Sequence record: NC_062582.1
DNA length: 64,000 nt
Reading direction: 5' to 3' (one strand)
This document shows, one piece after another, positions 45,874 to 51,145 of this stretch (positions are counted from its first letter, which is position 1; every line of letters begins with the position of its first letter). The position numbers and the translations under genes were made by a program. The notes beneath the pieces were generated by a model. That model was given only the letters and a program-made list of their open reading frames with translations, was not told where the DNA came from and ran no database searches.

Positions 45874-47180
45874 TTAACCAACAGCAATCCAAAGATGGAT
45901 TCGATAACCTTTAATATCGATATAACGGGTCAACATATAATCACCCGTAACAGGTAATGTATGCTTAGGAGCTACACCAAATACTTCATGTGGAAGTGCT
46001 GCACAGTAACGCAAAACTTCACGGATAACAAAACGACGGCGACCTGGAGTTAGACGGGGGAAGTCTGTACGGAGTTGCTCGTTGATCGAATATTCGTAGT
46101 GTCTGATTGCACCGTAGATCATACCCACTCCTTATCTTCGAGAGCCTTACACAAGTCTTTCCACATGGTAATCGGTTCTCGAACAATCTGACTGTTTCGG
46201 GTAACTTCAATTGTCTTTTTATTATTATCGTTACGCAATTGGTACTCTATGTAATCCCGTGTCCATTTTACCTGCTGAGCACTCAGTCGATCGAAGTACT
46301 GTTCCCAGAAAAGTTTATGGTAATCCGGGTCGTAGGAGATACGAAAACCAATTGACCAAAGATCAAGACGAATGTAGGGTACATAGTCATGACGACCAAA
46401 CCAGCTAGTACGAATCATTTCGTTACCTGGTTCGAGTTTAATAACGGTGAGCTTAAAATCTTTAAACAGTTCTTTCAGGGAGCTTAGCATTCTCTATTTC
46501 CTCAAAAGCCTTAGTGATGATGTAACCGTGCTTACCAACCCACGAACGAGCGATGACACCATTAGCCTCGTTGGTGCAAATGCTGTTATGATCAGACCAT
46601 GCTAGAACAACAGAACGTTCGTAATAAAGATCCCGTTGCTTCTTCAAAGCCTGTACAATCTCAACGGTACCAGCAAGCATCAGTGTAAGGAAAATAGACT
46701 CTTCGAAAACTTGTTTGTCTCTTACCCAGTCATGTTGCTCTGGGGTAAAGTTACGAATGAAATCATGTTCTTCTGAAACTTGTGGTAGCAAATCGATAAG
46801 AAATTCAGGTAGATTTGTTTTATTTAACATTTGTTCCATGCCTCTAGTTGTTTAATATATTCTTGGATGATCCAGCCGTACTTACCTGAAAGTTCTTCCA
46901 TAGATGCCCAGTGAGTCATGCAGCGACTACTGTTCAATAAGGTTCTTTCGATGTCAGCTGTTTCGTTATTGTATCTACGGTCAAGTCGGTCTAAAATATA
47001 CAACCCATGCTCGCTAGCAAAATCACGAAGAGCGTTGTACAGGTTATATTCCTCCTGTTGTTTCTTATCCACGCCAGTAGTAAACGAGCCTTCATGGAAA
47101 ACATGGTAAGGTGAATACTTATTGTAATCATCAAACGGTACAGGTGGATTATTAATTAGGAATTTTGAAGTGTCTATCAT
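45874..47180 (-). other. four hypothetical CDS: 45874..46128, 46119..46490, 46462..46839, 46824..47180
   Basis: Overlapping - strand ORFs downstream of the radical SAM gene. Confidence 0.65.
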
Positions 47181-48067
47181 TTTAGGAATGTCCCACAGCT
47201 AGCCATTACGTCGGTACCTACCCGTGGAATTAATTTTACTTTCGATTCCGGTAAACGGTGTCGAATATATTCGTAAAGATTATTGACGACGAATTCCGTA
47301 GGTTCTTCTGATTTATCGTTAGGTGGATTATATCGGACTATATTCCAGTTGACATTTAATTTTGCGTCTTTAACCGCATCAATAATAGCGCCAACGTGTT
47401 GGATATTGTCATTCTCACCTTTAATAAAAGCGTAATGAATCTTTGGAGTTTTACCAGTCGCTAATTGCCACATGCTCAGATTAAATAAAGCCGAGTCCGG
47501 ATGAATAGCTTTTGGTAACCAACGACGGCGAAAGTTAGGATCAACTGAATAAATTGAGTAATAGATCTCTGGACGAATAACTCGAAAGATATCCTGAAGT
47601 GCGCGATGACCCATTTCCTCTGGAAAGATAGTGGAGATCAAGAACTTGACATTGAGACGATATTCCATAGCCATGTCACCAAGTCGTTCTAAAATCTCGT
47701 CGGCGTTATCAAGGAAAATCTTATTCGCTAAAGGTTCCCCACGGGCCATGAAATTGAAATGAACAAGATCAGCTTGTGGTTTCCCTTCCTGAACTTGTTT
47801 CCAATAGTACTCCAAAACTTCACGAGCCTGTTGCAGGTATTCTTCAATTGTTGTATCCCGTAGTTTAGTCTGACCAGTTGCTGTCAACCAACACATACGA
47901 CAAGCTTGTTTACAGCCTGTCTGGGACGAAAGATAAACAATGAAGTACTCGTCAACCCTACGTACGTAACGAGCCTCTAACATCCCTGGATGGTCTTCGA
48001 AGCGGTGTTCAAAGTTTACAGATTGATCAAGCTTTGACTGGTGTTGTTTAAAGATTAGTTCACCCAT
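47177..48067 (-). CDS. RlmN/Cfr-like radical SAM RNA methyltransferase (variant)
   Basis: SSQTGCKQACRMC (CxxxCxxC), FMARGEPLAN (cf. MGMGEP), C-terminal DVMASCG (cf. DIDAACG); lacks the N-terminal domain; Cys118 position is Tyr. Confidence 0.8.
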   Translation of the reverse strand: MGELIFKQHQSKLDQSVNFEHRFEDHPGMLEARYVRRVDEYFIVYLSSQTGCKQACRMCWLTATGQTKLRDTTIEEYLQQAREVLEYYWKQVQEGKPQADLVHFNFMARGEPLANKIFLDNADEILERLGDMAMEYRLNVKFLISTIFPEEMGHRALQDIFRVIRPEIYYSIYSVDPNFRRRWLPKAIHPDSALFNLSMWQLATGKTPKIHYAFIKGENDNIQHVGAIIDAVKDAKLNVNWNIVRYNPPNDKSEEPTEFVVNNLYEYIRHRLPESKVKLIPRVGTDVMASCGTFLK

Positions 48068-48672: not shown

Positions 48673-49320
48673 TTAACCTACCCGTACTACGATGGTATCG
48701 TTATTGAAAGTTTCACCAACCCAACGGTTGAATGTATGATCTGTAATACCCTGATAATTCAGTGTAAAAGAAGCGTCGTCTACAAGAATGTATTTGATAG
48801 TCGATGCCGGTGTATCGATATATTTATCCCAAAGGTCATCCGTATTTCTGATTACATCACCTTTGTTATGGAGTACCACTGGATATAAAGAACCATTCTC
48901 ATGCACCGCGACTTTTAATGTCCCATCTTCATTACGATCATAAATTGTTTCTTCATAGGTCTCTACTTGACGATCTTTGATGATCTGATTAAGTATGCCT
49001 GAATTCATGTAGTGTCTCGGTAAGATAGCATTTGTACGCTTCACAAACTTCTCACCGATCACTTTCTCGATAGCTCGATCCTTACAGATGAACAATACTT
49101 CATCAACTCCGTGCTGTAATGCAAAATCTACAAGAGCATCGGTTTTACCACATTGTCTACCAACATAGAAACCAACCGTACGGTATTCCCGAACATCCGC
49201 ATGGGGTGGGTTTCGTGCATGGAGTCGATGTATCCAGTTCTCTTTTGTCTTGTCAATAAGAGCTTCGATGATTGAAGTATAAGCTACTTGAATTTTTGCT
49301 GGTGTAATAAAGTGATTCAT
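48673..49320 (-). CDS. stand-alone P-loop NTPase-like protein (terminase/helicase-type Walker motifs)
   Basis: VGFYVGRQCGKT and YILVDDA. Confidence 0.55.
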   Translation of the reverse strand: MNHFITPAKIQVAYTSIIEALIDKTKENWIHRLHARNPPHADVREYRTVGFYVGRQCGKTDALVDFALQHGVDEVLFICKDRAIEKVIGEKFVKRTNAILPRHYMNSGILNQIIKDRQVETYEETIYDRNEDGTLKVAVHENGSLYPVVLHNKGDVIRNTDDLWDKYIDTPASTIKYILVDDASFTLNYQGITDHTFNRWVGETFNNDTIVVRVG

Positions 49321-50683: not shown

Positions 50684-51145
50684 TTAAGATGCGAGGATAA
50701 CAAATGTATCGATACCAAAGTTATTAGCAACCCATTTGTAAAATGTCTTCTTCTTGCATCGACCATAGGTAAAAGCGGAGTCAGCATCTTCAAGGATGAT
50801 GTACTTGTAGCGTTTGGAACAAATTGCAAATTCCATTGGGATGGTGTGGATACGACGTGGGCCTTCAATAGTCAAATGACGCATGGCATTGTCTGGAATA
50901 TACCTCGACAGAAATGCATACGTATCATCATTCTTAGGAATAACCAACGTATCTGGATGACGCCTTACCCATTCTAAAATGAAAGCACTCTTACCCATGC
51001 CTCTACCGACGTGGAAACCTACTGACTGGTATTCACGGATAAGGTAATCAATTGGACGATCATAATCACCCGCGTCTTTGATATTTTGAACGACCACCGA
51101 TTTAGAATCGAGCATACTCTGAATAAAATCTACAAGTTTTGACAT
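50684..51145 (-). CDS. stand-alone P-loop NTPase-like protein, paralog of 48673..49320
   Basis: REYQSVGFHVGRGMGKS and YIILEDA. Confidence 0.55.
   Translation of the reverse strand: MSKLVDFIQSMLDSKSVVVQNIKDAGDYDRPIDYLIREYQSVGFHVGRGMGKSAFILEWVRRHPDTLVIPKNDDTYAFLSRYIPDNAMRHLTIEGPRRIHTIPMEFAICSKRYKYIILEDADSAFTYGRCKKKTFYKWVANNFGIDTFVILAS

Follow-up and report, generated by a model that had tools for sequence, protein, structure and literature searches.

The DNA analysed here (the window, 64,000 nucleotides of sequence record NC_062582.1) belongs, with 100% identity, to the 309 kb genome of Pseudomonas phage Phabio, whose host is Pseudomonas fluorescens SBW25, and contains gene gp444 (YP_010348413.1; 47177..48067, minus strand), the subject of this analysis. 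The coding sequence starts with ATG and specifies a protein of 296 residues with a radical S-adenosylmethionine (SAM) core resembling those of RlmN and Cfr, in which a tyrosine stands at the position of the resolving cysteine of both enzymes; the family that shares this feature is referred to below as the Tyr-118 clade. The gene sits within a run of small minus-strand genes, beginning one nucleotide after the stop of gp445 and overlapping the start of gp443 with its own stop (ATGA). Its existing annotation reads only 'Fe-S-cluster redox domain-containing', which is also the name of PHROG 27142, a family that matches gp444 over its full length (E-value of 2.3e-175, residues 1-296 against positions 1-300 of the 300 in the profile); the function that this name implies is putative.

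Class A radical SAM methylases use a textbook two-cysteine ping-pong mechanism, in which Cys118 of RlmN or Cys105 of Cfr deprotonates the adduct and thereby leads to its fragmentation. To our knowledge only two activities are known in this class, those of RlmN and Cfr, and these, the only characterised relatives of gp444 that we know of, both modify an RNA adenine. Enzymes of the class have, by definition, 'two conserved cysteine residues', and C118 or C105 is indispensable for resolving the protein-RNA crosslink; the C118A/S variants of RlmN and the C105A variant of Cfr stay trapped on the RNA (PMC9692996). A previous sequence-only reading of the window had likewise stated that RlmN and Cfr need both cysteines and that Cys118 mutants remain crosslinked, in agreement with the literature (PMC9692996; PMC5130265).

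Every motif that this reading had quoted for gp444 was found at the coordinates checked, all on the minus strand. Residues 41-59, YFIVYLSSQTGCKQACRMC (47891-47947), contain the CX3CX2C motif (C52, C56 and C59; 47891..47914) of the kind that ligates the radical SAM [4Fe-4S] cluster, and also Tyr45 (codon at 47933..47935), which occupies the position of the resolving cysteine (RlmN Cys118, Cfr Cys105). The sequence MARGEP (47732..47749) is the counterpart of the GGE-type SAM-binding motif M176-G-M-G179-E180-P181 of RlmN; M, G, E and P are retained and M178 is replaced by R109, which is invariant in the clade, so the change from MGMGEP had been read correctly. Cys291 (codon at 47195..47197), in the C-terminal loop D-V-x-A-S-C-G (here DVMASCG), is equivalent to the methyl-carrying Cys355 of RlmN and Cys338 of Cfr. 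In the segment YYSIY (47549..47563) the tyrosines Y169, Y170 and Y173, also clade-invariant, replace A231, I232 and H235 of the S-L-H-A-P-N strand of RlmN, and all three may contribute to an altered active site.

The equivalence of Tyr45 and Cys118 was obtained in three alignments. In a HMMER pairwise alignment to Cfr (9p0p), Y45 falls on C105 and C291 on C338. When the family profile is compared with the sequence of the RlmN C118A crystal structure (4pl1), the Tyr column falls on the mutated Ala118. A MAFFT alignment with Escherichia coli RlmN (NP_417012.1, strain MG1655) pairs C118 with Y45, C125/129/132 with C52/56/59 and C355 with C291, with no gap from position 118 to the cluster motif. 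The earlier placement of Tyr at the Cys118 position is thus borne out, as is the retention of the Cys355 equivalent, which is family-invariant. A search for another Cys that might take position 118 ended with the composition of the protein: gp444 has exactly four cysteines (52, 56, 59 and 291), all of them accounted for, so no substitute is available. Further RlmN residues retained in gp444 are D90, G100, E105, S120-S121-Q122, G124, the cluster cysteines, M176, G179-E180-P181, S213, P217, S233, R242, N286-D287, N312, G348, D350, A353 and C355-G356, and the clade-invariant changes are C118 to Y45, M178 to R109, A231/I232 to Y169/Y170, H235 to Y173 and E278 to H211.

The substitution had looked like an oddity of a single phage gene and turned out to be a trait of a large family. 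A word-indexed search with gp444 returned 1951 relatives, and all 120 of those listed, down to 52% identity, have Tyr seven positions before the first cluster Cys together with a C-terminal A-S-C-G. When 52 diverse members are aligned, C52, C56, C59 and C291 are the sole invariant cysteines, and Tyr45, Y169, Y170 and Y173 are invariant as well. A profile search of 1.84 billion representatives gave 420 clusters at E ≤ 1e-30, 1019 at E ≤ 1e-10 and 3337 at E ≤ 1e-3; among the best 150 representatives (50% identity) one is a fragment and the residue is Tyr in 148 of the other 149 and Cys in one (P0269). Tyr was also found at all 73 readable loci in bacterial genomes (64 + 9) and at all 76 readable loci on viral contigs. 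Over 400 sequences, down to approximately 35% identity, thus have Tyr at this position and never Phe, Leu or Ser. No literature on this clade, or on an enzyme with Tyr in place of Cys118, was found, although most subscription journals lay outside the search and the absence is therefore weak evidence.

Because the residue is strictly Tyr, and never Phe or an aliphatic residue, its hydroxyl probably matters, and the pattern argues for a role of the hydroxyl of Tyr45. This bears on the idea that gp444, as a class A methyltransferase, depends for the resolution of its adduct on a group supplied in trans (a small thiol or a partner protein's cysteine), with Tyr45 having only a structural or substrate-positioning role. 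The lack of a second Cys in gp444 would suit such a scheme, as would the statement that even for RlmN it is not known where the electron for the Cys radical comes from (PMC9692996). However, no partner gene is conserved across the phage, plasmid and bacterial contexts, and a merely structural role fits poorly with a Tyr that is never exchanged for Phe, Leu or Ser; we consider resolution in trans quite unlikely.

The structure predicted for gp444 is that of an RlmN/Cfr core. The AlphaFold2 (AF2) model has a predicted local distance difference test (pLDDT) score of 92 and a predicted template-modelling (pTM) score of 0.90, and the top 11 Foldseek matches of the model are all RlmN or Cfr (template-modelling (TM) scores of 0.75-0.81). 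The model aligns well with the RlmN-tRNA complex 5hr7 (Z of 27.7, root-mean-square deviation of 2.6 Å for 272 residues aligned with VIA-align); across this comparison Z is 25-28 for RlmN, 20 for Cfr and 16 for the next family, pyruvate formate-lyase (PFL) activase. Model residues 1-295 cover RlmN residues 77-359, so that the N-terminal helical domain is absent, and Pfam gave no match to the RlmN_N domain (PF21016) in gp444; here too the sequence-only reading, which had reported the domain as missing, was right. A mis-called start that hides this domain was considered and rejected, since the homologues have the same length and a conserved N-terminus and gp445 ends one nucleotide before the ATG. 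Five family members are longer, and their N-terminal extensions contain no Pfam domain. The β-extension that contacts RNA in RlmN (residues 77-118) is retained and is highly conserved in the family.

Curated models recognise the core and score it far under their cut-offs. The NCBIfam RlmN model TIGR00048 matches across the whole core (E-value of 2.8e-13) with 49.5 bits against a cut-off of 290, and the Cfr models reach 37-41 bits against cut-offs of 468-550 (NF000424, 40.9 against 530; TIGR04432, 37.6 against 550). In the other direction, the family profile matches the solved structure of Cfr 9p0p with an E-value of 2.9e-18 and RlmN structures with about 1e-8 to 1e-10. The protein thus has the CX3CX2C motif, the core fold with the β-extension and C-terminal catalytic loop, and the methyl-carrying Cys of class A, and lacks the second, resolving Cys and the N-terminal helical domain. 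Because two defining features are missing and the scores fall so far short of the curated cut-offs, gp444 should not be annotated as either RlmN or Cfr.

These low scores, and the loss of a residue held to be essential in RlmN and Cfr, could also be taken to indicate a catalytically dead pseudoenzyme that binds RNA or protein, for instance as a decoy. The cluster ligands, the SAM-binding motifs and the catalytic Cys are, however, invariant down to approximately 35% identity, which is typical of an active enzyme, and a dead protein is scarcely credible. A decayed RlmN was likewise rejected on account of the family-wide conservation. The pattern is instead typical of an active enzyme that may resolve its intermediate differently, and on sequence grounds gp444 appears to belong to a separate, selected and large third branch of the class A (RlmN/Cfr) radical SAM enzymes. 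The part of the sequence-only reading that proposed altered chemistry therefore gains support, from a Cys-to-Tyr change that is invariant in a deep family and from the retention of the methyl-carrying Cys, the cluster cysteines, M176, G-E-P and E105. Its two other proposals, a suicide crosslinker and a noncoding RNA (ncRNA) of the phage as substrate, do not.

The family resides mostly in jumbo phages and megaplasmids. All named phage carriers are jumbo phages (the Pseudomonas group of 201phi2-1, Psa21, D6, RVTF4 and Viktualia, Caulobacter phages CcrColossus and CcrPW, and Brevundimonas giants), the IMG/VR loci often lie on contigs of 200-465 kb, and approximately 75% of the ESM Atlas clusters nearest to gp444 are viral. 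Eight large plasmids carry the gene, including four Pseudomonas megaplasmids of 0.9-1.17 Mb (H33-H36), and the GTDB genome set contributes 74 loci. Orthologues with approximately 40-55% identity occur in phages of Pseudomonas, Caulobacter and Brevundimonas and in Actinomycetota (Nocardia), alphaproteobacteria (rhizobia), Planctomycetota and Myxococcota. Since orthologues with approximately 50% identity are present in such different hosts, the substrate should be a universal one, and the phage ncRNA near gp444 is an unlikely candidate. Gene contexts in the viruses differ from lineage to lineage: synteny among the 79 viral loci was seen only within lineages (RecA-like, terminase, SprT-like and metallophosphatase genes), and the contexts in 201phi2-1, CcrColossus and Bajun consist of hypothetical genes with nothing in common.

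A recurrent neighbourhood was found in bacteria. At 38 of the 74 bacterial loci the Tyr-clade gene divergently adjoins, mostly within 200 bp, an operon that encodes an AbiEii-family nucleotidyltransferase, a protein that combines a TIGR02996 domain with leucine-rich repeats (LRRs) and, at 22 loci, a conserved P-loop protein. The nucleotidyltransferase matches the AbiEii family with Pfam E-values of 1e-23 to 1e-25 and in PADLOC (AbiEii, 1e-52), and its best solved relative is AbiGII (9hlo). Nearly all of the 38 loci (for example L002:4850-8864, L005, L006, L014 and L081) are from Planctomycetota and Myxococcota, with complete chromosomes among them. The radical SAM genes linked to this module form one derived clade of 45, with one branch for Myxococcota and another for Planctomycetota; its nearest neighbour, with weak support, is the Pseudomonas jumbo-phage group. 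The module occurs only beside this clade, and AbiEii (PF08843) has no match anywhere in the Phabio genome. The P-loop protein (L002:4850-5665, minus strand, and 19 orthologues) was modelled with AF2 (pLDDT of 88) and best matches the tyrosylprotein sulfotransferases TPST1/2 (Foldseek E-value of 2e-6, TM score of approximately 0.6); a predicted fold of the tyrosine-sulfating type beside an enzyme family with an invariant, putatively catalytic Tyr is a curious coincidence.

Among the members of the AbiEii/DUF1814 family that have been studied are the MenT toxins, which lengthen the 3' ends of tRNAs (PMC10435456; PMC11541572). PADLOC contains no model for gp444, its bacterial orthologue or the LRR and sulfotransferase-like neighbours, and matched only AbiEii and, at one locus, an unrelated retron-type reverse transcriptase; as a set, the module has no PADLOC model and no description that we found in the literature. 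It may be an undescribed AbiE/MenT-like conflict system. At a Myxococcota locus (L081:2703-4115) an Apyc1-like gene of the metallo-beta-lactamase fold and a 2-oxoglutarate (2OG)-Fe(II) oxygenase gene adjoin the module, and at a Planctomycetota locus (L002:8981-9856) the neighbour is a reverse transcriptase of the retron/defence type. The Apyc1-like gene and the reverse transcriptase suggest a defence-island setting, and neither is conserved across loci.

In bacteria the gene lies beside a toxin of the abortive-infection type, where a one-shot effector could be tolerated, and the mutants of RlmN and Cfr that stay trapped on RNA show how one might arise: lacking the resolving Cys, each molecule of gp444 would become permanently methylene-bridged to its RNA target and so block it. 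Such an enzyme would act stoichiometrically, in phages that depend on host translation, and chromosomes and megaplasmids retain the gene stably, with no immunity gene apparent. An invariant Tyr is moreover unnecessary just to abolish resolution, for which any residue other than Cys would do. A one-shot stoichiometric enzyme fits poorly with a family found at 40-55% identity in bacterial chromosomes, in megaplasmids and across many lineages of phages, and the suicide crosslinker is highly improbable.

Genes for tRNA lie near the family gene in part of the phage set. In Phabio, tRNA-Ser(UGA) and tRNA-Leu(UAA) lie approximately 1.4 kb upstream of gp444 in the direction of transcription, with tRNA-Asn further on, and in the Phabio lineage tRNA genes adjoin the family gene at 11 of 13 loci at distances of 0.4-1.4 kb. 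The tRNA-Ser/Leu genes and tRNA-Asn of Phabio are flanked on both sides by gp447 (48673-49320, minus strand) and gp465 (50684-51145, minus strand), paralogous P-loop proteins that both belong to phrog_2586. Some unrelated huge phages have the gene inside arrays of 13-46 tRNAs, and on some mis-binned phage-like contigs a tRNA lies 0-500 bp from it. Five IMG/VR contigs (L112, L146, L120, L148 and L113) represent huge uncultivated phages with 17-46 tRNA genes, whose tRNA regions contain the Tyr-clade gene or have it at their margin. In CcrColossus a gene for a CCA-adding enzyme lies 1.7 kb downstream, and on the megaplasmid of Pseudomonas sp. FeN3W (L082:7007-9852) the next gene downstream encodes a 3'-5' exoribonuclease of the VacB/RNase II family.

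From the characterised relatives, the AbiEii-type neighbours with their link to the MenT toxins and the tRNA-related genes near some loci, the substrate of gp444 would, with moderate confidence, be RNA, and tRNA is the best guess among RNAs. Alternatively, the same scaffold could have moved to another class of substrate, such as a free nucleotide or cofactor, DNA or a protein side chain, with the loss of the N-terminal domain and the changed resolving residue reflecting that shift. In addition to the absent domain, the many clade-specific active-site changes (Y169/Y170/Y173, H211 and R109) agree with this, the neighbouring AbiEii-type enzymes are nucleotidyltransferases of the Pol-beta fold that also handle free NTPs, and the jumbo phages and megaplasmids that carry the family are rich in nucleotide-metabolism genes. 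On the other hand, no gene for nucleotide metabolism or DNA modification is a consistent neighbour, all characterised relatives act on RNA and the β-extension that touches RNA in RlmN is kept, which makes such a shift possible and, on balance, unlikely.

The interpretation that we favour, with a probability of roughly 45%, is that gp444 actively transfers a methyl(ene) group by way of a methylated Cys291, with Tyr45 replacing Cys118 as base or hydrogen-atom relay, on a ubiquitous RNA, probably tRNA. The cluster would be bound by C52, C56 and C59, and the methyl group of SAM would be moved onto Cys291. A 5'-deoxyadenosyl radical would then activate this methyl group, and the resulting methylene radical would add to an sp2 carbon of a nucleobase. 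Tyr45 would do the job of Cys118/105, as a tyrosinate base, as a hydrogen-atom donor to the Cys291 thiyl radical or as both, possibly helped by Y169, Y170, Y173, H211 and R109. By analogy with the Cys/Tyr relay of spore photoproduct lyase, tyrosine could in principle act in both capacities. Up to the crosslinked intermediate gp444 very probably behaves as RlmN and Cfr do, and Tyr45 would take over from there. Turnover would in this way be possible with no second Cys, and the substrate would be recognised with no RlmN-type N-terminal helical domain.

Several points weigh against this interpretation. We know of no precedent for a class A enzyme that works without the second Cys. RlmN C118A makes no m2A (PMC5130265). 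The absence of the N-terminal domain, which helps to hold RNA in RlmN, would also fit a substrate other than RNA, and the isoelectric point (pI; family median neutral, as for RlmN) and net charge are uninformative. Clustering of the 79 viral loci gave no conserved neighbour across phage lineages. A tRNA gene lies within 6 kb at only 18 of these 79 loci, or in six of 22 clusters at 60% identity, and where tRNA regions make up a tenth to a third of the phage genome such proximity is close to chance. Proximity to tRNA genes was accordingly rejected as strong evidence; it lends weak support, being genuine in the Phabio lineage and some huge phages and holding overall for six of 22 clusters.

A Cys/Tyr pair is also known as a radical relay elsewhere. 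In spore photoproduct lyase (SPL), hydrogen atoms are relayed by Cys141 and Tyr99. SPL is discussed in PMC9692996. By analogy, gp444 might not be a methyltransferase at all, and Cys291 and Tyr45 might form a hydrogen-atom relay that serves radical repair, or else a lyase or isomerase reaction, on a nucleic acid. Besides the parallel itself, the several further invariant tyrosines of the family can be cited for this, and next to a toxin family that damages tRNA, as in the bacterial module, a repair enzyme is conceivable. The Cys-carrying C-terminal loop has nevertheless kept its RlmN/Cfr form (G-x-D-x-x-A-[AS]-C-G), as has M176, which flanks the methyl-Cys radical, and nothing in this analysis pointed to another reaction. 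We regard a relay of this kind as improbable.

If Tyr-mediated resolution is accepted, a broader scheme can be outlined, although it is speculative and we hold it to be doubtful. The third branch of class A, resolving its methylene-bridged intermediate through Tyr, would possibly be one side of a conflict centred on tRNA: Planctomycetota and Myxococcota would tie the gene to an AbiEii/MenT-type toxin, a tRNA nucleotidyltransferase, with an LRR sensor and a tyrosylprotein-sulfotransferase-like enzyme, and jumbo phages and megaplasmids would carry it alone, to mark or protect tRNAs or to blunt toxins.

The family is of interest for enzymology because it is a natural one, with hundreds of sequence clusters, in which the methyl-carrying Cys is kept and the 'indispensable' resolving Cys has become an invariant Tyr. 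It offers a ready-made test of whether the second Cys serves as base, radical sink or disulfide partner, and a novel product may come to light; Tyr-mediated resolution, if true, would be chemistry undescribed for class A. Phage biology gains a marker gene that is widespread among huge phages and megaplasmids and has no assigned role. In two bacterial phyla its constant partner is an AbiEii/MenT-type toxin, which points towards an RNA-level interplay of mobile elements and hosts that has yet to be explored. P0269, the sole member of the best 150 representatives with Cys at position 118 (V-V-C-L-S-S-Q-T-G-C), has either reverted to Cys or branched off early, and could serve biochemical work well as a natural control from within the Tyr clade. 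Klebsiella phage 05F01 encodes a distant RlmN-like radical SAM protein (gene_104; L077:3863-4792) with Val at position 118 and a Cys three residues later (L-S-C-S-H-G-C), apparently another natural variant at the position of the resolving Cys; it is flanked by a gene annotated as an ADP-ribosyltransferase and by an anaerobic ribonucleotide reductase.

The likeness of gp444 to spore photoproduct lyase would be functional only (an active-site Cys and Tyr and a nucleic-acid substrate); that enzyme belongs to another subfamily, has no methyl-Cys and acts on DNA. Cfr (PDB entry 9P0P), the 23S rRNA m8A2503 methyltransferase, is the best sequence match among the solved structures and shares the catalytic layout, but has Cys105 where gp444 has Tyr45 and possesses the N-terminal domain that gp444 lacks; this analysis of sequence and structure gave no sign of an action of gp444 on A2503 or of an influence on antibiotic binding. 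RlmN (E. coli b2517; PDB entries 3RFA and 5HR7), the dual 23S rRNA m2A2503 and tRNA m2A37 methyltransferase, has the core fold and β-extension in common with gp444, together with CX3CX2C, the G-E-P SAM motif, the equivalents of M176 and E105, and C355 as C291. The two differ in that they are approximately 20% identical, gp444 lacks the domain formed by RlmN residues 1-76 and has Tyr for Cys118, and H235, A231/I232, M178 and E278 of RlmN are matched by Y173, Y169/Y170, R109 and H211. Phage relatives that keep the Cys are 23-28% identical to gp444, and a FastTree phylogeny with E. coli RlmN as its root places them outside the Tyr clade. The gut-phage contigs MT835987 and MT835527 encode full-length RlmN/Cfr types with Cys at 118. 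The RlmN-like protein gp170 of the jumbo Tunturiibacter phage Tunturi_5 (L076:3911-4909; 28% identity, Cys at 118) lacks the N-terminal domain, as gp444 does, but retains both catalytic cysteines, and the loss of the N-terminal domain and the loss of Cys118 are therefore separable.

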